Source: Hyphochytrium catenoides
Lineage: Eukaryota; Protista; Hyphochytriomycota
Assembly (NCBI GenBank): GCA_900088475.1
Contig: FLMG01003914.1
Coordinates: 57,025 to 121,024, forward strand
Direction of reading: 5' to 3'
Length of the DNA: 64,000 nucleotides
Shown: one piece after another, positions 15,614 through 64,000 of the stretch
Layout of the letters: every line of letters begins with the position of its first letter
Position numbering within the stretch: the stretch's first letter is position 1
Notes under the pieces: model-generated
The model's input: the letters and a program-made list of their open reading frames with translations, nothing else
Databases searched by the model: none
Told to the model about the DNA's origin: nothing
Made by a program: the position numbers and the translations under genes

Positions 15614-15648
15614 NNNNNNNNNNNNNNNNNNNNNNNNNNNNNNNNNNN
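15614..15648. other. Assembly gap (N run)
   Basis: Run of N. Confidence 1.
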
Positions 15649-39664: not shown

Positions 39665-42600
39665 ATGGGTAACGCCCGCTCCAAGCACTCGAACGCAGGC
39701 GGAGGGCCCTCGAGGCCTGGTGAAGGAGGAAGCACTGTCGGTGCGCTGGGGCTCAGTCACTTCTACTTTGAAGAGGTAAGACCTTGCTCTCGCTATTCCT
39801 CACTAATTTCCTATCTTTTGCTGAGGCCTTCTACTCATCCTGGTGGTACTTAGGATCTCGAAGAGAAAGAGGAGCACAGTCCTCGCCTTCTTACTCCCAG
39901 TAGGTTACCCTTCTCAGCTAGCGGAGAGGAAAGCATGCTGGGCCAGAAGCTTCGTCCAGGCATTTACTGCTGGGACGGCACTCTGAAAAGGAGTACTAAG
40001 GCTGCGCACCCTCTGTCGGAAGAACAAGGGGAGGAGGAAGAGGAGAAGGAAATAGATACTGAGCTAAGGGAAGAGGCAGGGAAGGAGGGTAGGATGGTCC
40101 AGCCTCACCGCTGTTTAGAGCTTTTGGGAGTGGAAGCTGCGTCCGCGTCCGCTGGCAGCCGTCATACGTGTGTGCTAGCAGAAGATGGTACGGTCCTCTG
40201 CTCCGGAAGTAATGCAGACTACCAGGTACGGGCTATGTTCTTCTTCTGTTATTGTCCTTGTTACCACTTTTGTCTTCTCTTCTAAACACTGGGTACTCTA
40301 AGATGCTGAAGAGCGTGCTTCGTGGACTGCTGCAGTTCTGGGCCCTAACCCTCCTCGGACTTTCTTCTGCTTGCTCGGGGTTCTCTAATGGTAGATTGGG
40401 CACGAAGATCGGTCCTTCTATAGCGAGATGCCTGCCCCGCTATCCTTCTCGCCGTCTTCTCTTCTGTGCGTCTCCGTGTCCTGTGGGGACTCCTTCACTG
40501 CACTTGTGACTTCCACCGGTGCACTATATACCTTTGGTGCCAATGAGGCAGGACAATGCGCACAATCCGTCCGAAACTGGAGCCTCCAGGGCTCTACGCC
40601 GACTAGGCCCAGAAAGGTGAATCTTCTTTTGTTTTTTGAACGAACTCGTTCTCGATCGCTTTTTTCTTCTTCACCTTGTTCTAGAGTCTGGTTTCCTATA
40701 CCTCGTATCTCCGCAGCTATGTGTCCTATTGCCAATGAAGCGCACCTACGCCCACAGGCAGTCCTTTGTGTATCGATTGTACGAGGTCTAGCTTGCCTTG
40801 CCACCGTTGTGGGCTACTCCCAGGTGCTCCTCCGTCGGCAAATTGCTTTATCGGAGACTCTTTTTGTCTCTCGCTTTATCAAGGGCATCTATCTATTTAT
40901 CTATCTACAGTACTCAACCATCGTCACTTGGTTTCTCTTGGTGCTAGGTTGAAGGCCCTCTAAAGGATGTTTTCCTTGTTTCGGTGGCCTGTGGATCGCA
41001 TCATCTTCTGGCTCTTGATCGGATGGGAGGAGTCTGGACTTGCGGGGGAGGCGAGAGTGGACAGCTAGGAATAGTATTGGAAGGAGGAAGAAAGAAGTAT
41101 GACGAGCTTTCTCGGCCCCATCTGTCTCTTTCCACTGCCCTAATCTCCTATCTCCTGCCCTAGTTCCAAGACTGTCACCAAGTTCCCTCTGTCTCTGCGA
41201 TGTGCTGCGCTAACTCCTCCTCCCCCATCTCCTCCACTTTGCTCTTTTCTCTCAATCTGGGCTGCACTCTTTTCTTCCCTCCATATGTTGCAGCTTGTCT
41301 ACCCCTACTTTGATCCCGACCCTCCAGGGGAGAGCCGTCACCCAAGTGGTGGCATCTGGAGCGCAGTCTGCAGCCTTGACCGCCAGCGGCCAGGCATTTA
41401 TCTGGGGCGCACAGATCTCACCTTCGAGCTCGCCGGCTCCTTCCTGCCTCTGTCGCACCTGCCGGCTACGGGCGTCATCCTCGGCTTCCCTATCATCCTC
41501 TGTACTGACAGCGAAAGGACAGGAAGAGAAAGCGCGAGCAAGCACAGCAGTAGTGCAAGTGAGGAAGTTTACCGTCCCTCAGCCAGTGCCTCCTCGGCTA
41601 ACACAAGAGCAACGGATAGTCTCTTTGTCCTTGTCTCGATCATTCTGTCTGGCACTTACACAGCCTGGTTTGGCCTACTGCTTAACCTTCATTGATGCAG
41701 TGGGACAACCATCATATCTGGACTTTTTCCGGGACTATATACCCCTAACAGATGGCGGCGGCAGAGAGGAAGAAGGGAAAAAGGCCGGACACCCTCACGT
41801 GCGCCCTGAGAAAGGGAGAGAGGGCAAAGGCAAAGGGAAGAAAGGGACACTTGGCATAGACGGGCCTAAGTGGGGGTTAAGTTCAGCGATTGTTTGCACG
41901 CAGGGGATGCCCCTGACGGAGGAGACGGCAGAAGAGCAGGTAAATCTAAGAAAGGGAGTCGAATCACAGTGTAGAACAGGCCATAGTACGGTTGTAGTAC
42001 CAGAAGAGAAGAGGAAGGACCCTTTGATAGCCTAAAGTAAAGGGGCACAACCTGAGGGGGGAAATGCGCGTGCCCACACCGAACGCCGCGTAGTAGGCAG
42101 ATAATGTGGAAGAAGGGGAAGCACTAAATAATTCGAATGGCTTCGAAGCAGATAGAGAGGCGAAGTTTGAGAGGAGGAGCTGACAGCGGGGGTTAGGGAT
42201 AATTTCCCAAGGTCGATTGACGAGGACCGCTCTTGCTTGTTAGGAATCCTCTACCTTTGCTCCACTACGAGCGGTCTTGCAGAGTTCTTCGACGCAAGAC
42301 TGCGCCTTCCTTCTGGCTCTTGACCGAGATGGGCACCCTACCCAACAAACTGCCTGCTACATGGTCACCGGCAGGACCAGACAGAGAAAGCACTGTGCAT
42401 ATGGTGAGGACTGCGGTCTAAAGCGTGTGTTGAGTTAAAATCTTCTTACAGATGCTATAAGCTAAAGCTGGTGCTCTGAGCTATCATCCACCTTGTGTCT
42501 ACTTATACAATGCCGAGACATCAAACGCGTGTCCAAGTCTCTCAAACCGCACTTCGTGGCATTTAGCCTCTCATCCGTGTCACTAACTTAGATTTGGGTG

Positions 42601-52621: not shown

Positions 52622-52716
52622 NNNNNNNNNNNNNNNNNNNNNNNNNNNNNNNNNNNNNNNNNNNNNNNNNNNNNNNNNNNNNNNNNNNNNNNNNNNNNNN
52701 NNNNNNNNNNNNNNNN
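52622..52716. other. Assembly gap (N run) following a (CT)n tract
   Basis: Run of N after CT repeats. Confidence 1.
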
Positions 52717-53338
52717 TTATTTGGTGCCTCTGTCTCGCTTCATCCAGTTCCCAGATCTGGTTCTGATCTCCGGATCTGTAGACTTTCATTGAGAAACATA
52801 ACTCTGCTATTATTATTATCTTATCAATCTTCGCGCCTCAGTCCAACGCTTGCTCGACGATCTCTATCTGTGACTCTACGAGCTCCGTGATATTCTCTTC
52901 CGACTCCCCTGCAATCGTGGCCAAGCCGATAGACGACTGGTAAGCAATTCTGGGTGCCAAAGAACGGGGAAGCACGATGGGAACACACGGTTGACTTCGA
53001 AGAATCGTAGTGAAGATGACATTGGAGGTGTTGAGCTTTGAGTGACTAAACTTATGTTAGTGAGAGAGTTGAGAGTTTGGCGGAGAAAGAGACTCTCCAA
53101 GATCTGTTGGAAGGACAGGCTGATCTGGGTACTTTCTCCCTGTTCTTTGGGCATCATCTTCTGATCTGTCTCGCGCTTCGGCTTTCGCTCACCCTCTCCT
53201 GACGATCATGGGCAGACTTTTGGACTAGACGAAGTGCGAAGAAGCCAAGTGACAGGCAAGAGTGAGCACCACGCTTCTACGTCGCAGAACTTTGTGCACT
53301 TCTATAGTGGAGAGCGAGGACGCGATTGCTCGGTCACG

Positions 53339-55374
53339 ATGTTTTCAGGTAGGAAGGCCAGGAAGCAGACCATATGGAGAGAGGCAGAGAAAGAGATACA
53401 GGACAGGATGAACACTGGGCGCAAAGAGATATGGGGCAAGGAAGAGTTGTCTCCGCCCTGGAGACAAAGAAAGGCTATTGAGGGTCAGGAGGTGGGAATG
53501 TGATGAGTCCTTGCCAGGGCAAAGGCGCCCAGTAGTCGAACATCTATCCAACTGCACTTCTTATAGCTTTGAGGGAAGCTGAGGAGGAGGCAAAAGCGAA
53601 GGAGGCCGTTAAGGTTAGCAAGCCGCTCAAGTTCTTGCCGACCTTTTTTTTCTTCAGTGCCCTCCATTCACCATAGCTGCTCACTCTCTCTCTCTCTCTG
53701 GTTTCCCTTTCTGGCGTCTCTCTCTCTTGCTTGGTTGTCTTCTTCTCTCTCCCTCTGGCTCTTTCTTTTTTTTTTCTCTTCCTTTCCTCGTGCGGCCTCC
53801 TCTGTCTCCTCATGCCGCCTTCTCTGTCACTTCTCTCTAAATCTACTGTCATTGGGAGGAGGAGTATTTTGTGTTCTAGATATGTTCTAGGCATCGGAAG
53901 TCTCTATGTAGAGAACTTATATGTGCACGTCTGTCCGCTCCTCTCCTTTTCTGTCTCATAGGGCTCTCTCTCATTGCTCCTTTCACACTTACCTGATCAT
54001 TACTCCTTGGATTTGCCTCTACGAAATATGTCATATCTCTTAGGCGCTGTCGTTCAAGCTTTCTGCCAAGTCCAACATTAACTGGGGAGATGAAGATAGT
54101 GACGATGACTTCGACCCTCTCGACGCTGTGAGGGCCACAAAGGCAGCAGCAGTAGCAAAGGTATTAGGCATCTGAAATAAGCCTAGATTGAGAGGGGAGA
54201 GGGGGCCGTAGGGAAAGAAAGCTAAAGAGATAGAGGCAGCCCATAGTGGCAATCAGTGAAGAGCATCCTGAGTTGACTGATGTCGCTTAACGCTGGGACG
54301 TCTTCTCTCAGGCTAGAAAACAGTCAGTGGATAGTGAGAGCGAGGAAGAAGAAGAGGAGGAAGAGTCAGACAAGGACGAGACAACAGAAGAGGCGACTAC
54401 GAACAAGCAAGAGGGAGAGTCAGCAACACAGTCTGCGGCTGACAAAGGTAAATCCTCTTCCTAGGCAAAGTAGAGAGCGTCATTGTCATTCTCTTCCTAC
54501 CCGTCTATCAATCGCTTGCTATGTCACCTCCGTTGCCTTCAAAGCGTGTATGTCAATTCCTCTCTAGTTATCCTTCTCTCCGCCTCTCTCGGACACAACG
54601 GGCATGGTCCCTCTATGATGATGCTTTGGCACTTCTGGGCTTTGCTTGGACTTCGCGGTTCTGGGAGTTTTGTTGGCTAATGGCGCCTGTTATCCTTGCT
54701 TATTATTGGCTAAAGCCGCAAAGGTTGTGAAGCCTCCACAGCGGCAATTGTCAAAGAAAGAAAGGAAGAAGAAGGAAATGGAAGAGCTAGAGAAGATTTT
54801 GGCAGAGATGGGAGTTGAACAGGCGGACCAAGAAAAGGATGGCAAGCCTGCAGAAGAGACGAAGGCAGAGAGAGACGAAGGAGAAGAAGCAGCCGAGGAC
54901 GATGGAGAGACTGGAGAAGCGGGGGATAAGAAGAAGCGGAAGAAGAAGAAGAAGGAGAAGGAAAAGGCAAAAGAAGGTGAGTTATACTCAGAATTCTCCT
55001 TGGAGAGGAGGGCAGACCCTGATAGAAAGACTGTTGAAGGGAGCATGGAACGAACCATTCGACTCTTGGTCTCACAGAGACGAGGGGAGAAAAGACGGAA
55101 GAGAGAGAGAGGCAACGACTCTTGTTCTTTTTGCTAACACCGTCTCTTTCCTCCTTCTCTTTCCCGCGTGATGACTCCTATAGCCACTCCTGCACCGGCC
55201 AGTACAGAGCCACCAGTAGCAGCTCCCTCAGATATCAAGGAAGTTCTGAAGGCGAAGGGAAAGAAGAAGCCTCAGAAGAGTGAGGCAATCCTCCTTGCTG
55301 AAAAAGAAGCCAAGAGCAAACCAAAGCAGAAGAAGAAGGACAAGAGCCATTATAACCAGATGCCTACGAGATAG
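53339..55374 (+). CDS. Uncharacterised K/E-rich protein of a conserved eukaryotic (plant-like) family, multi-exon; start uncertain
   Basis: The model reads MFS|ALREAEEEAKAKEAVK|ALSFKL...NWGDEDSDDDF...|...RQLSKKERKKKEMEELEKILAEMGV...|...KKKDKSHYNQMPTR*. The motifs recall an uncharacterised plant family (RQLSKKERKKKELAEL...HYNQQPVR). Confidence 0.75.
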
Positions 55375-56056
55375 TGTGCTTCTTTCCTCCTCTCTTTTCT
55401 CTTCCTATTCTCCCGGTAGCAACTAGCTCTCGTACTAATAGAAGACCATACGATTGGGAAGCTTTGTGGCCGTTGTCTGTACGTCACTGATGACACGTGA
55501 TTAGGGTTCAAGAAGCTGAAGGCACTGCCTTGGTGGGCATTGCACTTATTAGTCAGTCTGAGCCTTCCTTGGAGGCTCGGTTGTCAATTCGCCTCTGCTT
55601 CTAATATTCGCATGCTACACGGGGCCATAGAGACGACAGCCAACTAAGTGTTTTCCCTTGCCAGCTTGCTTACTAGTCTTAGAAGGAAGGCTTGGGGAGA
55701 GGAGAAGGATTGCAGGGGGCTCTGTCTCTGCCACAAACGATCGACGGCCAAGAACAGGAAACTCTCTGCTGTCGGATTCTCACTTTGTCTCTCTCTGTTG
55801 TTTGTGAGTTCCTTGGGCTATCTTTGCACTCTCTCTGTGCAATTGTGTCACTGTGGTAAGGCTGCTTAGACTGTTCTGCCAAATATGTGGCGACACGCAG
55901 CACCGCATACGCTAGATGGACGGCTAAAGATAGATATACATGCAGAGATGCAGACCAGTACTGAGAGGACTTATTCTGCCTTCAGAGAAAGAAGCGTAGA
56001 ACTAGAGATCTTTCTAGCGGTCATCACCTGTTGGGTTCTATGATATAGATGGGAAG

Positions 56057-58183
56057 CTATGACTGGAGATTTGCTACTGCTCTAACCTCCTCTGCTTTTT
56101 GGACTGCCCGAACCGTCTGTCGGGCGCGTGAGGAGGGACGAACCGTGTTCCCTTTAACTCCTCCTAGGGTTTCTCTCTGATTATCTCTCTCTTTCCCTCC
56201 TTGATCCGATGTGTCAGGGATATGCTTGAAAGCCTCTGCGTAGTACGAGCGGTCTAGCCCGTCTCTCGCTCCATGAGAGGGAAGATCTGCTCTTCCTATT
56301 CCTAAGACTGACGACGCTCTTTCTCGAACCAGGCCCTCTGAAAAGGGATAAGCAAGTTCTTGTTAGAAGAAACGTTGAAAGAAGGATAGCGGATACTTCC
56401 AAAGATAGGACAACATAGTTTGTTGACCGAACTCAGGGATGGAGAGAGAGACCGAAAGAGTGAGAGAGAGAGCGCGAGAGAAAGAGAGAGAAAGAGACAG
56501 AGACAGAGAGAAATAGAAAGCGAGAAAAACGAAGAAGCGAGAGCTCCGAAGAGAACAGTCCAGAGAGAGGTTATCGCCACATGTAACAAGGAAGGTGTGA
56601 CAGACCTGATACTTGGAGCTGTTGCCGTCTCTCTATTGCAGGCCCTGTGGCTGCTGGTCTATGATGTAGGTAATAGTTAAAGGAACAGCGCCAGCACAAA
56701 ATGGTCAGTGATAATGCTCTCAAGTGGACGGAAGAGGTCTCAGGCAGAAAGAGAGACACTGCTGATAACCAAAAGCCAGAGCAGGATCGTAGAAAGTAAT
56801 AGAGAGAAGGTCATCTGTCGCGCTCAAAGTCTTTCGGAGCTTCATCAGCAGAGTGGTTTCATAGGTTAGGATTAACAGTGAGAAGGTAAGCAGGCTGGGC
56901 CGCAGACGCTGCAGGGCGAGCCTGTAAGTCAAGAGTCACCAGCCACGCGTGCAGATGACGACAGCGCTGCGAAGGACTGAAGGTCGCGCAGATTCGATGA
57001 GAAACGTACAGGAAGAATCTGTTGGCGGACTCTCTGAGTGCCACTGCTCCTTCCGCCTCAAGGCGCTTAGTGACTTCCTCCAGCAGGTACTTCCGACCCT
57101 TCTCTGGTTTGCGCTCCAGGGAGGCAGCGTCAGGGTACTCGGCACAGGAAATAATATTGAATCCGTGAGGCTGAGACATGAAGAGATGATAGACAGAGGA
57201 ACTGCATAAGAGGTTGCCATGTGTCCAAAGCTCCAGAAGAAGAGAGTAGAGGAATTGGAAAGGAGAGAAGAGAGAAGGAAGAGAGTTAGGAGTTTCCATT
57301 GTTTTACCTTGTCAGCTTGATTAAGCTTTCTTCTTCTCTCAATGACGGCAGAATCCGGCTCTGTCGGACCTCGATCTTCTTCAAACCGCACCGAATCCTC
57401 TGACGCCGTAGCCGGCCGACGGCGGTTAAATCCTAAAGAAAGGATAGCGGGATGAAAGGACGGAAAGGTTATAACTTGAGAGAAAGAGAGAGAGAGAGAC
57501 AACGGAAGCCTAGAGAGAACAGCACTGACGTCTATGGCAAATCGAACCCAGGCCACCCTTGAATTTCAATGAAGAAGGAGAAAGAATGCGAGAGAGAGAT
57601 ATTTGACGTTCAACAGGTAGAAGAGATAGCTCTCATCGACTTTTGGGATAATCTACCCTTTAGCTCTGGTGCAATCCATCTCTGTCTCTCTTTCTCCCTG
57701 TCTCTCCCTCTATTTTCTGTTCTGTCTCGCTCCCTGTAAGCTTCTCTCGTCGCTTTCTGTCTCTTTCTCTCTCTCTGTCTCTCTCTCTCTCTGTCTCTCT
57801 CTCTCTGTCTCTCTCTCTCCCTCACACACACAAACGCAAACACATAGAGCGTCTCTTCCTCTTTCTCCCTTCTTCTCCTCCACTACTAATGTCAACACTA
57901 TATTCCTCTTATTCTCAGACTCGGGTCCATTGTCCTTACCTCTGCCAAACTTGCTGCTGACGCGGGATCCCGGTCTATGATCGTCAAGCGTCGTGTCTGG
58001 CGCTCTTAAAAAGTGCCAGCGCTCCATCTCGGTTTCTACTCTCACTTTCCCTCTGACATTCCTGCTCTCTACGCGTCTCTCTAGCTTGGAGAGCTCCAGA
58101 GGCGAGAGATGCCGAGGAGGAGCCTCACCCGTGAAGTCCACCACGGAGGCCGTCTTCTTGTCAGCGAATAACTTCTTCGTCAT
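56057..58183 (-). CDS. Uncharacterised protein, ~5 exons
   Basis: An in-frame spliced model gives MTKKLFADKK...SKFGR|GFNRRR...DSAVIERRRKLNQADK|YPDAA...ESANRFFL|PAATGPAIERRQQLQVS|EGLVRERASSVLGIGRADLPSHGARDGLDRSYY...EEVRAVANLQS*. The last exon frame is not in the ORF track. Confidence 0.65.
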
Positions 58184-58759
58184 AATGAGGACGCAGTGGG
58201 TCTGAAGACGGGAAGAGGACGACAAAAGAGACAGCCAGTTCGGGACTAATAGATTTGAGAAGAGAGAAGAGAAGACGAGCTTGGTAGACCTACTAGAAGG
58301 AGCAATCGAAGGGCATGGCCATGAGTCGGCGCTGTTCACTATGATAATATAGCGATAAGGTGATGCCGACTTGGCCCTCTACGGCATCAGACTCCTTCTA
58401 AAGGTTCGGCGGCACGGTGCGCGATCGATCGATCGAGAGAGCGAGGAAAGAGAGTCAATAGAGGACAATCAGTGGCAAGAGGGAGGCGGAAAAAAAGCAA
58501 CCTCCCGCAACGTAGAGAGTTTGGCAAGCTGTTGGTGGCTGAGATTGACGCGCTTTGGAGACTCATCGCCAGGCGTGACCATCTTGCACTGCTGTCAAGG
58601 CGAGCAGCAAGTGAACATGCAACCATTCTTCAGGGTATGAGAGAGAGAAAGAGAGCGATAGAAGAGATTGGTAGAGCGACCCATAATAGGGAGAGCAAGA
58701 GAGTGTGAGATAAGCACAAACAGTCAATCAACTGGAGGGAAGGAACGGTGAAAGAGGGA

Positions 58760-58844
58760 GAGAGAGAGAGTAACGAGAGAGAGAGAGAGAGAAAACAAGA
58801 GGAGAGAGAGAGAAGCAAGAGGAGAGAGAGAGACAGAGAGAGTG

Positions 58845-58889
<45 letters not shown>
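58760..58889. repeat. (GA)n microsatellite / purine-rich tract
   Basis: Near-pure GA repeats. Similar CT/GA tracts occur at ~39120-39200, ~43300-43610, ~57760-57820 and ~62450-62600. Confidence 0.9.
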
Positions 58890-58895
<6 letters not shown>

Positions 58896-58964
58896 AGGCC
58901 TGTGATTACGCTGGCTGAAGAGACAGAAGAGAGAGGATGATGGGAAGAGAGGAGAAAACCCAGA

Positions 58965-61128
58965 TCAGAATCTTTGGGAGGTTACATCATTCCACTGCAG
59001 CACGGTCATTGGGTTGGATTCAGCATCCAAAGCTTGTATTACATTGAATGGATGTCTGGATTCATAATAGCATGGCCTAAACTGACCCGTAACGGCTAGT
59101 TGGAGCGCCCTGTGAATACTGTCAGAGGATGATGGATCGCCTCCAAGACAATGCCGCTCGTTAAGCATGAAGGCTTTGCAAGAGATCAGTGTCACTGAGG
59201 AGAAAAGAGGGCTCTCGACGCGAAGGAAGCAGGGCATATGGTCGACAGTGCTGCTGGAACGGTCTCTAACTTCTTTCCATGACGATAGCAACTGCTTTCC
59301 CTAGTGCTCAGGATCTCTAGTTTAACTACCTCTTCCAGTGTTGCTCTCCCCACCGGATGGAGAGCGGTGGTGGCGCCCAGTTATTGAGTGCAAGCATTTT
59401 GCTCCTGTCATTTACAAGCGCATAGCATAATAGAGACTGGGCTACTAATCGTGACTGGTAATCTTGACCCAGTCAGCACTTTGAACTGGAGCCAGAAGGC
59501 GCAGTTGACTAGGCATCATCATCAGGCTCTCCCATAGAAAGAGAACTAGAAGAGAGATCGATAAAGCTCCTGATGAGCACTTTTTGGGGAGCGTGGAAAG
59601 GAGTCAAATGGTCACTTTCCTTTATTATTTGTCCTTTCAGCACTCAAGTCGACCCACTCGCCGCAGACTCTGCTATTCTCATCCTTCTACCTGAAGGACG
59701 CTCATCGCATAACCCTCTAAATAGGGCTCCTCAAGGTCACCATGCAATCCGTGCGGTGCCGTTCTTTTCCAACCTGTCGCCATATCGCTGTCGCTAGGGC
59801 TCAGCATGCTACAGCGAGGAAAGCCTTTCCTAACGTCCCCAAACGAGCATAGCATTGTCTTCTTTGGCAATGTGAGGTTCAGACACCCATGGCAGAACCT
59901 CCTTCTGGTCTAGGCAGCTGACCAGAAACGCTCTTGAGAGGTAATTCCGCAACAAGTCTATGGCCAATATCAGAATAGAGTTATTTATAGAGATACGGAC
60001 AGACAACCAAGAGGAGAAGAGAGGCACATCGACCCAAACAGAGCGTCGCCTGGGCCCGGCGTCAATCAGTTGACGACAATGACACAGTGTAAGGAAAGGA
60101 AGAGATAGAAGAAGCGAATGTAAGAATAGCCAGAGTTCCTCCATTCGGGCTCATATACAAGAGACACCTGCGGAGAGTGAGGAATGAAAGTTGAGGTAAA
60201 GAGATAGCCAAGCGGCACTGGCGCCACTGCAGAGAAGCATTTTGGAGGAGAAGAAGAAAATTGCTCTCACGAAACGCTCTCGTTAACCAAGGGTTCTTCA
60301 GGGCCTGCTGGCCGTCGTTGTACGATGTCAAGAACTGTGTTCGGCTATAGCCAAGTGCTTATTACTCATCATCCGTCGGAGTAAATCATCCCTTAAGACA
60401 AAGAAACAGTCAAACGGCATTGGCTAGTTAGCGCGCGTACGTGCCTAGTAGCATAGATGATAAAATAGGATTATCGGTGCTTCAAGATCATAATAACGTT
60501 CTAACCAAGCCCTTATGTTACAGTCGTCACTACCATCGGCGTGTCTTGGAAGAATACATTACCGAGCTATTCACATTTTTCTTAGCTTTCCAGACGAGGC
60601 CAAGCAGTCTCAAGACTGGACGGATCATGTGAATAGTGGTCACGCGCTGGCGCGACTCAAACACTGTTTGATCTTCGGTTGAGTGGTTACGGCGGTCAAT
60701 GAAGGAGAATAGCTCGTGCTTCAATAAAGAAAGATCACCAAGTATAGGAGGGTCGAGCACCGAGTATAGAAAGAAAAAGAAGGAGACAACAAGCAGACTA
60801 GGTTCCGACTCCTGCCTCCAACAACAATACCGCTTTGAAGTCACATTTTGTATGATCTACTGAATGAAGCGTCCAGCCTATGTTGGACATTACTGCTTGT
60901 TCCTCACCTATAAAGTGGTGATGAGGTGTTGCTAGGGCTTCTTCTGTGGACAGAAGGAGAAGACAAGCGACAAAGAGGAGAGAGATTGACACTGCCTTCA
61001 AGCAAAGATGGAACAAACAGCGGCGTAGAAGGAGAGCAAAGCGGGCCGCCGTAGCAAGATGCTTACAACCATTGTCTGTTGCAAGATTGAAATCTGAAGG
61101 GACGGGTCTTGCTACGGTATCTCTTCAT
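58965..61128 (-). CDS. Probable multi-exon gene of unknown function; model unresolved
   Basis: Several open segments are bounded by GT/AG and pyrimidine tracts (e.g. RTQFLTSYNDGQQALKNPWLTRAF; DLLRNYLSRAFLVSCLDQKEVLPW; terminal exon ...LLSSWKEV...VLQWNDVTSQRF*). I could not join all exons in frame. Confidence 0.35.
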
Positions 61129-62881
61129 GTACCATAAAAATGAGAACCTGCGTGAATGTTGAACAAGACGTCTTTTCTCCTTCTCTGGACACACCTCTAC
61201 CTACCTTTGTAGATCGTGAGCAAGGAGGAGGAAGTCTCCTTATTAACTGGTCCGTCTCTCGTCCACCTAAATACTTCCCGCAGCGTGTTTCTTACTTCAC
61301 CACCTACAGACAGCTCTTGTGGCCAGTTGGCTCCGCCTCCTTCTGCCAACATGAAGCCTCCACTGATGGTCACCTTGTCTTCACAGTGTCTATCTACTTC
61401 ATGGCAGATCAAGGTCCACTCGAACGGCCTTGTCCATGTACGGACCTGCACTTACTTCGGCCTTTTATTAGTTCACTCTATAGAGTCCTCCTTCAGCCCT
61501 CATGACCCGCCTGTCAAGCTTCACGTCTCCTAGGAAGCTGCGGACCTACTGAACTCCTTGGCCATGATGATGATGATGTCCGTCAACCCCGCATCTTTCT
61601 TCTACTAGAGGAGGTGGCACGATTATGAGGAGAGAGACCAGTAATAAAAAGACTGCAACAGAGACTCTCATTTGCGGCTGGCCTGCCGTCGGACAGTCAC
61701 CTGACCTATCAGATGATTCTGCCACGCGCATCTCTGGTTCGCTGCCTCATGCCCGACTGTGAAAGGGGGTGACCGAAGTTAGCCCAGTATGCGACCGTTA
61801 GCGACTCTCTTATCTCGCGCTATCTAGGACATTGGTGGTTATTACTCTATGTAGATTTAGACGGACTCTAGGTCTCGTCAGTATTGGTCTTTGTTCTAGA
61901 CCTTAGGTACTAAGATCGCCGATTGAAATCAACAGACCTTAATCTGACCGCTGACCTCTGACCAGACTGTGGGCCTACTAGAGTCCTGCAAAGCTTAGCG
62001 AATTTATTTAGTCATCAGAGTAGGACAGCGGTCTAGAAAGTCCATACAGAATCTTTACCTCTTCTCCCGGCCATTGTCGTTCTAAACCCTAAGCTGTGTT
62101 GGACAAGGCAGTTCTGGTGATAGATGCTGGAACCTAAATTCTCACTGGACAGACAAGAGGATCTAGGTTTCAGTTCTAAACTGGTCGGCCGGCCGTTTCA
62201 AGGAGAAGTGCAAAGTGAGCTGCACTGGACCTCAAGATACTGATTGGCCAACCCACTTCTCTCCCCTCTCTCAAGCCTCTGTCTCGCTATGTTCAATTAT
62301 GTATTATAGGCTTTAGCTCATCTCTCTATCTCTCTGTCTCTCACCTGTAGTGAGCCCACACTCCGCCAAGGTTCAACCATCAACCGTCACGATCACTCAC
62401 CTCCTGTTCCTTTCTCACAGTCCGGCTCTCTCTTCACACTCAGCTTGCTTTCTCTCTCTCTCTCCTGTCCTCTCTTCTCTCTCTCTCTCTCTCCCTCTCT
62501 TTCTTTCTCTCTCTTTCTTTCTCTCTCTCTTTTCTCTCTCTCTCTCTCTCCCTACTTTGTGCACTCCTCCTTCCCTCGTCTCTCTTCCTCTCTTCCTCTC
62601 TCTATTCTCTCCCTCCCTTTCCTTCTCCAGGTGTCACATTACTATGAGGCCGTTTGCACGACCGCTGGCTGCTGGCCGTTCTTCTCCTCCAAAGTTCCGG
62701 AGCTCAGAGACTTCCCTCTCTTCTCTGGCTCTTCTGCTCGTAGCCAAGCGCCTGACCTCTTCTCCTTTCTCTTCCCCGTACCTGCGACCATCCTCCTCAT
62801 CACAAATCCTCTTTCTTCCTGCCCCTCATCCACACCACGGACGGGGTAAAACCACGCCAGCAGTCCGTTCTGCTTCCTTTT

Positions 62882-62888
62882 TATAAAA
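62882..62888 (+). promoter_or_regulatory. Candidate TATA box
   Basis: TATAAAA ~120 bp upstream of the ATG at 63005. Confidence 0.4.
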
Positions 62889-63004
62889 AACCGAGCCAAG
62901 AGAGTCAACGCACGGCAAAGCAAAGCATCCATCACTGCTGCCTCCCCGTTCATTTCTTTCGCTTTCTATAGTGCAGAGTCCATCTTCAGCGCTGTTATCT
63001 AAAG

Positions 63005-64000
63005 ATGAAGCTCTCTACACTGTTTCTCTCTCTGGCCATGACGGCCCTAGCCCTTCCTTCCTCTCCCTTGGTTCAGGCAGAAGTTCCTCAGGAGCATTCG
63101 CATGACTCCATCACCAATCTCATGCGCCAGACGTTTCTTAAGAACACTGGTGGGCTCCCTGACCCAATCTTCGGTCTTCTCGGCGACGCCAAAGCCAATG
63201 AGAATGCCCCGGATGGAAATGGCGCTTGCTTGCAGCAGAACATTGCGGACCAGGCAGTCACCAACGCTAAGGCCGCTAATGATATGAAGGCTCTTGCTGC
63301 CGCTTTGAAGTACCGCTCGCTAGAGCGCAACACTAATGGCGTTGGCGTGGCTTCTGTGGCTTGTAACAAGCAGCCAGTCAACCAGGAGCTTGCTGGGCTT
63401 TCTCAGCACCAAGATCCTGCTTCTAACAACGCTGCAACCGTCAACAAGAATGTTGAGATCAACCTGGCGAAGGCTCTGGCGGCTTTGGGCGAGAACCCTC
63501 TTGAGGCTCTGGAGACGGCAACATTTGCCCCAGGTAACAAGGGAGACAACACCGGCAAAGGGAATACCTGTGATGATGTGCACAACACAACGGACTTGCA
63601 GCAAGATTGCATCGTCAAGAATAAAGCTCAGGTCCCAGCAGCAACGGCGGAGGAGATCCAGGCCGCAGTGGGTGGCGCTCTGCAGGCTGGGAATGGAGGA
63701 GCAGCAAATCAGCAACAGGATGTCACTGCCGCGCCAGAAGCCAACGATAACAACAACGGAGCTGACCAGCAGCAGCAGAACAATCAGCAGCAGGCCACCA
63801 ATAACAACAACCAGCAAGCTGCTGGTGGGTTAGGATCTTGCAACGCTCAAGAGGCTCAGCTAGTCGTCGGTCTTGGAGTCGACAACGCTGGAGAAAGAGC
63901 TCAAGAGGTGCGCTTTGCACCGGGAGCATTTGGCCAGGCCAACTCTCCCTTTGGAAACCAAGGCTCTGCCTTGAATCCTGCCATCATTGCAAACTTCATC
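63005..64000 (+). CDS. Secreted protein resembling an uncharacterised fungal family (3' partial)
   Basis: Uninterrupted ORF from ATG 63005 to the window end: signal peptide MKLSTLFLSLAMTALALPSSPLVQA, then EVPQEHSH...DPIFGLLG...CLQQNIADQAVTNAKAA...YRSLERNT...QHQDPAS...TFAPG...GKGNTCD...CI, an N/Q-rich linker, then GSC...GSALNPAIIANFI. Confidence 0.9.
   Translation, partial: MKLSTLFLSLAMTALALPSSPLVQAEVPQEHSHDSITNLMRQTFLKNTGGLPDPIFGLLGDAKANENAPDGNGACLQQNIADQAVTNAKAANDMKALAAALKYRSLERNTNGVGVASVACNKQPVNQELAGLSQHQDPASNNAATVNKNVEINLAKALAALGENPLEALETATFAPGNKGDNTGKGNTCDDVHNTTDLQQDCIVKNKAQVPAATAEEIQAAVGGALQAGNGGAANQQQDVTAAPEANDNNNGADQQQQNNQQQATNNNNQQAAGGLGSCNAQEAQLVVGLGVDNAGERAQEVRFAPGAFGQANSPFGNQGSALNPAIIANFI

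Follow-up and report, generated by a model that had tools for sequence, protein, structure and literature searches.

A secreted modular protein gene of the stramenopile Hyphochytrium catenoides, probably acquired from a zoosporic fungus

Hyphochytrium is a free-living sister of the oomycetes and a textbook example of convergence on the fungal way of life. Gene transfers from Fungi to Pseudofungi are established for the oomycetes (Savory et al., 2015, PMC4447370) and were also described by Richards et al. (2011), as that work is cited in PMC5795050, and in a 2026 survey 16 Fungi-to-Pseudofungi transfers were counted, with Chytridiomycota as the donor in 6.5 and H. catenoides as the recipient in at least four, OG21829, OG5986, OG6077 and OG4574 being on record for chytrid donors or H. 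catenoides as recipient (PMC13345962). The analysis presented here concerns an open reading frame (ORF) at positions 63005 to 64000 (+) of a 64,000-nucleotide stretch of the H. catenoides genome (the window, by which the whole stretch analysed is meant), at the end of scaffold C2973. The ORF encodes a predicted secreted protein of two modules, A and B, and at a probability of about 0.8 the gene was acquired from a fungus, most likely a zoosporic one, and then became part of a small host family. The fungus-to-pseudofungus route is thus already documented, and the window gene adds one more case, which agrees with the published ones in its donor and recipient groups, in the secretion of its product and in its connection with the osmotrophic lifestyle. 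Unlike most published transfers, which concern enzymes and transporters, this case involves a non-enzymatic family of wall or surface type, composed of three fungal modules (A, B and C) distributed over at least five genes, and one of these modules, A, has no solved look-alike. None of the supplementary-table entries of the 2026 survey (PMC13345962) is recognisable from its description as this family, the unannotated OG4574, OG9023 and OG35382 being possible candidates.

Regarding described fungal proteins, one group for comparison carries the Pfam 38 family CLU5d_C (PF27672), which takes its name from 'pathogenicity cluster 5 protein d' of Colletotrichum graminicola; according to PMC9146757, PMC11432805 and PMC8381356, CLU5d is secreted, and appressoria need it in order to penetrate fully. 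A PF27672-carrying protein of this species, P0104 (C. graminicola GLRG_07748), has the A-B layout, with 48% identity over 241 amino acids (aa) of module A. A paper search for its locus tag retrieved none naming it, and P0104 is at most a candidate for CLU5d itself. As in the PF27672-carrying A-B proteins, a signal peptide, module A, a low-complexity linker and a cysteine-containing module B follow one another in the same order in the window protein, which shares their conserved motifs and cysteines. Unlike the fungi that carry such proteins, Hyphochytrium is a stramenopile saprotroph without appressoria, and the B module in the window is partial and only about 30-45% identical to the fungal ones. 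The second group comprises module A proteins of zoosporic fungi, namely KAL7746562.1 of Sorochytrium milnesiophthora, RKO93777.1 and RKO89487.1 of Blyttiomyces helicus and KAI9144471.1 of Paraphysoderma sedebokerense, to which the window protein is 56-66% identical, but which, unlike the window gene, are A-only or partial models according to a profile scan.

The first ATG of the frame lies at window position 63005 (+) and is followed by 332 stop-free codons up to base 64000, as the initial annotation had reported in noting an ORF of at least 332 codons. There is an in-frame stop just upstream of 63005, and since the open frame (stop to stop) begins only at 62972, after that stop, 63005 is the first possible start. 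Base 64000 of the window is base 121,024 and thus the last base of scaffold C2973 (121,024 bp); the ORF reaches this final base, and the gene is therefore truncated at its 3' end by the assembly. The same circumstance accounts for the absence of the ORF from the ORF track, likewise noted earlier, because that list drops ORFs running off an end, and the lesson for annotation is that a gene at a scaffold end is invisible to such a track. The ORF covers at least the 5' two-thirds of a genuine H. catenoides nuclear gene that lacks introns. Its missing 3' end was not found in the H. catenoides assembly by six-frame genome searches, neither close relatives nor the missing end were detected in a metagenome-contig scan, and an exact look-up of the 332-aa product returned no record. 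A 1.6-kb contig (C195) was considered as the missing 3' end and rejected, as the gene that it carries is distinct, complete in itself and begins with a signal peptide.

Reading from the N-terminus, the start codon and predicted signal peptide occupy 63005..63076 (+; aa 1-24) and form a hydrophobic leader, MKLSTLFLSLAMTALALPSSPLVQA, which ends in VQA and is immediately followed by EVPQEHSH, so that cleavage after aa 24 is predicted from the sequence. A leader directly before the nearly invariant EVPQEHSH is also present in fungal members of the family, which agrees with the signal peptide proposed earlier. Module A (63077..63694, +; aa 25-230) is conserved, four cysteines included, and forms a mostly helical secreted domain; it is followed by a low-complexity linker rich in N, Q and A (63695..63820, +; aa 231-272), visible in the translation and modelled at a predicted local distance difference test score (pLDDT) of about 50-60; the fungal A-B proteins have linkers of other composition at the same position. 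Of module B, a small cysteine-containing domain, only the N-terminal part is present (63821..64000, +; aa 273-332), up to the end of the scaffold. The architecture of the window gene as assembled is thus A-B, which a profile scan of the fetched proteins found to be common in fungi; module C does not occur in this assembled part, and the complete gene may be A-B or A-B-C.

In an alignment of 72 sequences, module A has conserved cysteines at C75, C120, C189 and C202, nine invariant positions (L59, E107, N109, Q136, D137, A139, T173, F174 and G177) and about 45 further nearly invariant positions, including the four cysteines and the N-terminal E26-H33. The window protein keeps all the invariant and nearly invariant columns, including E26-H33, E107-N109, Q134-A139 and T173-G177, and the motifs that the initial annotation had given as a family signature (EVPQEHSH, DPIFGLLG, CLQQ..ADQA.TNAKAA, YR.LERNT, QHQDPAS, TFAPG and GNTCD) all lie at invariant or nearly invariant columns. 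The conserved polar residues E26, Q29, E30, H33, E107, R108, N109 and Q134-D137, a cluster with acidic, amide and histidine side chains, suggest a defined site for ligand binding or catalysis. In the AlphaFold2 model based on the 72-sequence alignment, module A is compact and mostly helical, with pLDDT of 91-98 over aa 31-180 and 201-220 and a dip to 63-78 over aa 181-200, and confidence is low for the linker and the partial module B. Foldseek found no meaningful match to the module A fold in the PDB (E>1), the best Z in a VIA-align comparison against 48,161 representatives was 4.7, well below the noise level of that tool for helical proteins, and neither single-sequence nor profile searches of PDB sequences matched the window protein. 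A Pfam scan of the window protein and five fungal relatives also gave no match, the copy of Pfam scanned being one without PF27672. Its very high model confidence and the lack of a solved look-alike recommend module A for structure determination.

The distribution of module A was investigated by an exhaustive HMMER (phmmer) search with module A alone against 1.84 billion representatives at a cut-off of E<=1e-3, which retrieved 263 clusters, 70 of them at E<=1e-30; names were obtained for about 60 of the 263, namely the best ones and those informative for the tree. The best match is from Sorochytrium milnesiophthora (E = 2e-53, over aa 2-190 of the 191-aa domain), and the nearest named relatives are those of Sorochytrium (Blastocladiomycota, 61% identity), Blyttiomyces (a chytrid, 66%) and Paraphysoderma. 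Named zoosporic relatives include S. milnesiophthora and Paraphysoderma sedebokerense in the Blastocladiomycota and Blyttiomyces helicus, Nowakowskiella, Quaeritorhiza, Fimicolochytrium and Phlyctochytrium in the Chytridiomycota, and further relatives belong to the Dikarya. The identity of the window protein to those of zoosporic fungi (56-66%) is higher than the chytrid-to-Dikarya identities within the module A family. Every nameable match in this search is fungal, with no oomycete, other stramenopile or other non-fungal eukaryote among them, which bears out the relationship that the initial annotation had proposed for checking by homology search. Near-full-length clusters all fall in clades with named fungi, except for the window gene, its sister from soil and two unnamed sequences in its group. 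A word-index search retrieved 1199 proteins, the best 120 of which are from Ascomycota, from Basidiomycota or unnamed, at 42-53% identity; among these 120, many bear the source name 'cell wall protein' or 'cell wall mannoprotein' and many carry PF27672. The earlier assignment to an uncharacterised family of ascomycetes and basidiomycetes was therefore right as to its fungal nature and too narrow as to its extent, since the family, judged from these comparisons, is pan-fungal and the closest relatives of the window gene are zoosporic. In addition, a 98-aa ORF of a soil-metagenome read (P0203, SRR5690242) is 87% identical to the window protein over aa 25-95 and has a different signal peptide; this close environmental relative would represent either another hyphochytrid or the donor lineage.

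Module A trees were constructed as a quick tree of 116 rows and a careful one of 51 rows, with no outgroup and with one non-fungal lineage. Both trees contain three well-supported blocks, all starred: a core chytrid clade (100/98), a Dikarya clade (100/99) and a group of eight (97/86) placed between the two. This group consists of Sorochytrium, Paraphysoderma, two unnamed sequences, two Blyttiomyces proteins and the window protein with the soil fragment, the last two being paired in the careful tree (97/86, starred). The path from the Hyphochytrium tip to the base of the group is about 0.42 changes per site and shorter than the paths of its fungal neighbours. The nesting inside Fungi on which the transfer proposal leaned depends on the root of this unrooted tree; what the tree itself gives is a starred group (97/86) that unites the window protein with Blastocladiomycota and Blyttiomyces.

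Module B (aa ~273-332) was recognised in the initial annotation as a second cysteine-containing domain after the N/Q linker, and this domain is genuine: aa 33-93 of the product of another host gene, on scaffold C810, match it at 66% identity, and its counterparts in fungal proteins do so at 33-45%. Outside the host, the two B modules are nearest to that of the chytrid Cladochytrium (42-45%) and then to those of Dikarya (33-41%). A profile built from B modules matches aa 277-332 of the window protein and the C-terminal part of the PF27672-flagged proteins P0003, P0030 and P0104. BLAST of module B against PF27672-flagged proteins gives 33-40% identity at E about 1e-5, for a window domain that is incomplete at the scaffold end, and there is a weak alignment with aa 467-516 of the C. 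graminicola protein P0104, which carries PF27672. By sequence, module B appears to correspond to the region that Pfam 38 calls CLU5d_C.

Six-frame searches of the genome revealed four more secreted, intronless host genes with module B and/or module C: that on C810 encodes a protein of 525 aa with modules B-C, while those on C195 (453 aa), C3217 (862 aa) and C3832 (504 aa) encode module C proteins. All four have signal peptides and long tracts rich in T, A, N, Q and G, and they lie on scaffolds of 26 kb (C810), 17 kb, 72 kb and 1.6 kb (C195). The four host copies of module C form one clade (97/98, starred) among fungal sequences. A word search with module C gave 18 matches at 41-56% identity, all from Chytridiomycota, Blastocladiomycota or Gigaspora or unnamed, and Atlas look-alikes of this module fall in clusters of Basidiomycota and Mucoromycota. 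The architectures A, A-B, C and C-B were seen in fungi in the profile scan of fetched proteins, where Fimicolochytrium (P0160) is the only zoosporic fungus with A-B; Blastocladiella P0134 has a PF27672 flag upstream of module C, a place at which the B-module profile gave no match. Module C of the C810 protein is modelled as an immunoglobulin-like beta-sandwich and in this resembles 6tn6 (the C-terminal module of a Thermotoga petrophila mannanase), 3pdg (the Fn3-like module of CbhA) and 8wae (a porphyran-binding carbohydrate-binding module). The model superposes on such modules, which have accessory or carbohydrate-binding roles in glycoside hydrolases, with Z of 8.9-9.1 and root-mean-square deviations of 2.6-3.0 Å over 84-103 residues, at 9-16% sequence identity, Z values that are common for this fold and thus indicate the fold class only.

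The surroundings of the module C genes contain some further ORFs of interest. Large secreted Reeler-domain ORFs lie upstream of the module C genes on C3217 (L019:409-2976, +) and C3832 (L023:1570-3321, +), an arrangement that would fit a segmental duplication in the host genome. The 2026 survey records a 'Reeler domain' family, OG17088, with an uncertain Pseudofungi/Fungi transfer topology (PMC13345962, Suppl. Table 4). On C810, a 699-aa ORF upstream of the B-C gene (L007:7397-9493, +) has a weak match to hydroxyproline O-arabinosyltransferase (PF23452, 31 bits). Between the Reeler and module C genes of C3832, a 289-aa ORF (L023:4485-5351, -) matches DUF4142 (PF13628, E = 2e-21), a family known mainly from bacteria, and this ORF may be another acquired gene.

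Vertical descent is the least improbable of the alternatives and is itself very improbable. Under it, a very early eukaryote would already have possessed the modules, and Fungi and the hyphochytrid lineage would be the only groups to have kept them, which is compatible with an unrooted tree in which Hyphochytrium and its soil relative stand on one side of a branch and the fungi may be monophyletic, and also with the fully host-like codon usage, as for an old resident. It requires, however, independent losses in oomycetes, other stramenopiles, alveolates, rhizarians, plants, amoebozoans and holozoans, none of which is represented among the named or placed matches from the 1.84 billion representatives and the word searches. 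Moreover, the fungal neighbours of Hyphochytrium have longer branches than it does, the 56-66% identity exceeds the chytrid-to-Dikarya values, and modules A, B and C all show the same pattern.

Regarding the identity of the host, two rhodopsin exons of the genome are 100% identical over 194-195 aa to the PDB sequences HcCCR (8gi9) and HcKCR2 (8h87). These exons are H. catenoides channelrhodopsins, and the host is therefore a stramenopile 'pseudofungus' and not a fungus, in line with the non-fungal genome assumed at the outset. The only small-subunit rRNA found in the genome is organellar, with flanking tRNAs. The published assembly comprises 4758 scaffolds and the mitochondrial genome, with an average of 3.64 introns per gene (PMC5795050). 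Physical integration is best seen on C810, a 26-kb scaffold without N, in which the B-C gene lies about 1 kb from a gene for a 776-aa ABCG half-transporter; the best 120 relatives of this transporter are led by Phytophthora, Pythium, Saprolegnia and Aphanomyces (45-50%) and include no named fungus. With the B-C gene next to an oomycete-type ABCG on gapless sequence, contamination is unlikely. The guanine-plus-cytosine (GC) content, the GC content of third codon positions (GC3) and the codon usage of all five genes are within the range of native genes. For the window copy, the link to the host is indirect: a repeat of the host's type stands 380 bp upstream, the composition resembles that of the host, and a scaffold join spans a gap of 95 N. 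The earlier caution about a chimera or contamination is thus answered by direct linkage for the C810 paralogue and not for the window copy, because the 10 kb upstream of the latter contain no assignable gene and the 95-N gap lies beyond them.

Upstream of the ORF, a CT-rich low-complexity repeat (62446..62627, no strand assigned) is located 380-560 bp before the ATG. Three copies of this CT/GA-rich repeat are present in the window (57679-57823, 58750-58897 and 62446-62627), and they match more than 200 places in the genome, on many other host scaffolds, at 75-90% identity and in both orientations. Runs of N are found at 617-671 (55 bases), 15614-15648 (35 bases) and 52622-52716 (95 bases) and none from 52717 to 64000; because of these runs the window sequence is a scaffold rather than a contig, and the last of them divides the 11-kb block of the ORF from the rest of C2973. 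The GC content is flat along the window. About 8 kb upstream of the ORF lack long ORFs, and Pfam scans of ten stretches resembling ORFs within those gapless 10 kb gave no significant family. Several coding-looking stretches rich in K, E and S at 54291-55371 (+), ending in KKKDKSHYNQMP, likewise matched no Pfam family and are probably exons of one small charged protein. Further upstream, at 40428-42035 (+), ORF pieces with RCC1 repeats (PF13540, PF00415) look like part of a multi-exon native gene.

These observations bear on the possibility of an assembly artefact, in which the 3' end of the scaffold would come from a contaminating fungus or from a chimeric join at the 62446-62627 repeat. The position of the ORF at the very end of a short-read scaffold, the low-complexity repeat 380 bp upstream of it and the lack of any datable host gene in the last 8 kb are what such an error would look like, yet it is very improbable. 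Identity to the closest named fungal protein reaches only 56-66%, four related genes are located inside other scaffolds, one of them on gapless sequence 1 kb from an oomycete-type ABCG, and the host copies of B and of C are mutually closest, as expected of duplication within a genome; it is not credible that a fungal contaminant supplied five diverged paralogues in host-like scaffolds. Composition and codon usage match the host, and the approximately 8 kb upstream without long ORFs are unlike a compact fungal genome. BLAST, blob-plot and tetramer screens in the genome paper identified no contamination apart from nine small, possibly prokaryotic scaffolds (PMC5795050). Finally, a join through the host's own type of repeat would most simply connect two host loci and would leave the inference of transfer unchanged.

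Least probable of all is transfer in the reverse direction, from a hyphochytrid-like stramenopile to an early fungus, for although an unrooted tree gives no direction and a few Pseudofungi-to-Fungi cases are on record (PMC13345962), module A is present in Chytridiomycota, Blastocladiomycota, Ascomycota and Basidiomycota as against one stramenopile species, module C also occurs in Glomeromycotina with look-alikes in Mucoromycota, A and C each have many lineage-specific fungal clades, and the Hyphochytrium sequences are a tip group and not basal to each fungal phylum.

Acquisition from a fungus accordingly draws on the identity of the host, the homology and its restricted distribution, the tree position, the linkage of a paralogue and the host-like codon usage. 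Several points weigh against it, or at least against stating it more firmly. The tree is unrooted, so that 'nested in Fungi' fails if the root lies on the Hyphochytrium branch and holds for any other root; the branching order inside the group of eight is weakly supported (84/54); only about 60 of the 263 module A clusters were named; no gene assignable to stramenopiles is present in the gapless 10 kb upstream of the window ORF; and other hyphochytrids are without genomes, which bears on the timing of the transfer and its breadth within the group.

The fungus-to-protist transfer of a secreted or surface protein proposed in the initial annotation is thus upheld and can be refined to a likely zoosporic donor and a small gene family of three modules. 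The gene would have passed from a fungus, most likely of a zoosporic lineage near Blastocladiomycota or Chytridiomycota, into the hyphochytrid lineage, with duplication and shuffling of modules in the recipient giving a host family that would comprise the window gene and at least four genes with B and/or C. Zoosporic fungi and hyphochytrids share saprotrophic habitats in wet soil and fresh water. The 3' truncation of the window gene leaves room for a single transfer or for two, one of an A-B gene and one of a C or B-C gene. The product would be exported and, through low-complexity tracts that are probably glycosylated, retained in or on the wall or the cell surface, acting there as its fungal relatives do. 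Because of the architecture, the source annotations of the fungal proteins and the CLU5d phenotype in a distant ascomycete, a secreted, wall-associated protein for binding or remodelling is the most likely role, at about even odds.

A more far-reaching version, for the present doubtful, is that what a zoosporic fungus gave was no metabolic enzyme but the cell-surface modules A, B and C, and that the recipient made at least five secreted mucin-like proteins from them by shuffling and multiplying. If true, part of the 'fungus-like' wall and rhizoid surface of this pseudofungus would be literally fungal in origin, and module A would be a fold class new to the PDB, with a conserved polar site pointing to an undiscovered activity on the wall or a substrate. 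One module appears to be common to the Hyphochytrium family and a Colletotrichum penetration factor, and Hyphochytrium offers a tractable, non-pathogenic setting in which to study A, B and C, whose fungal members are uncharacterised apart from one mutant phenotype. A transferred and expanded wall or surface family would extend the toolkit borrowed by pseudofungi from the enzymes and transporters of osmotrophy to the cell surface.

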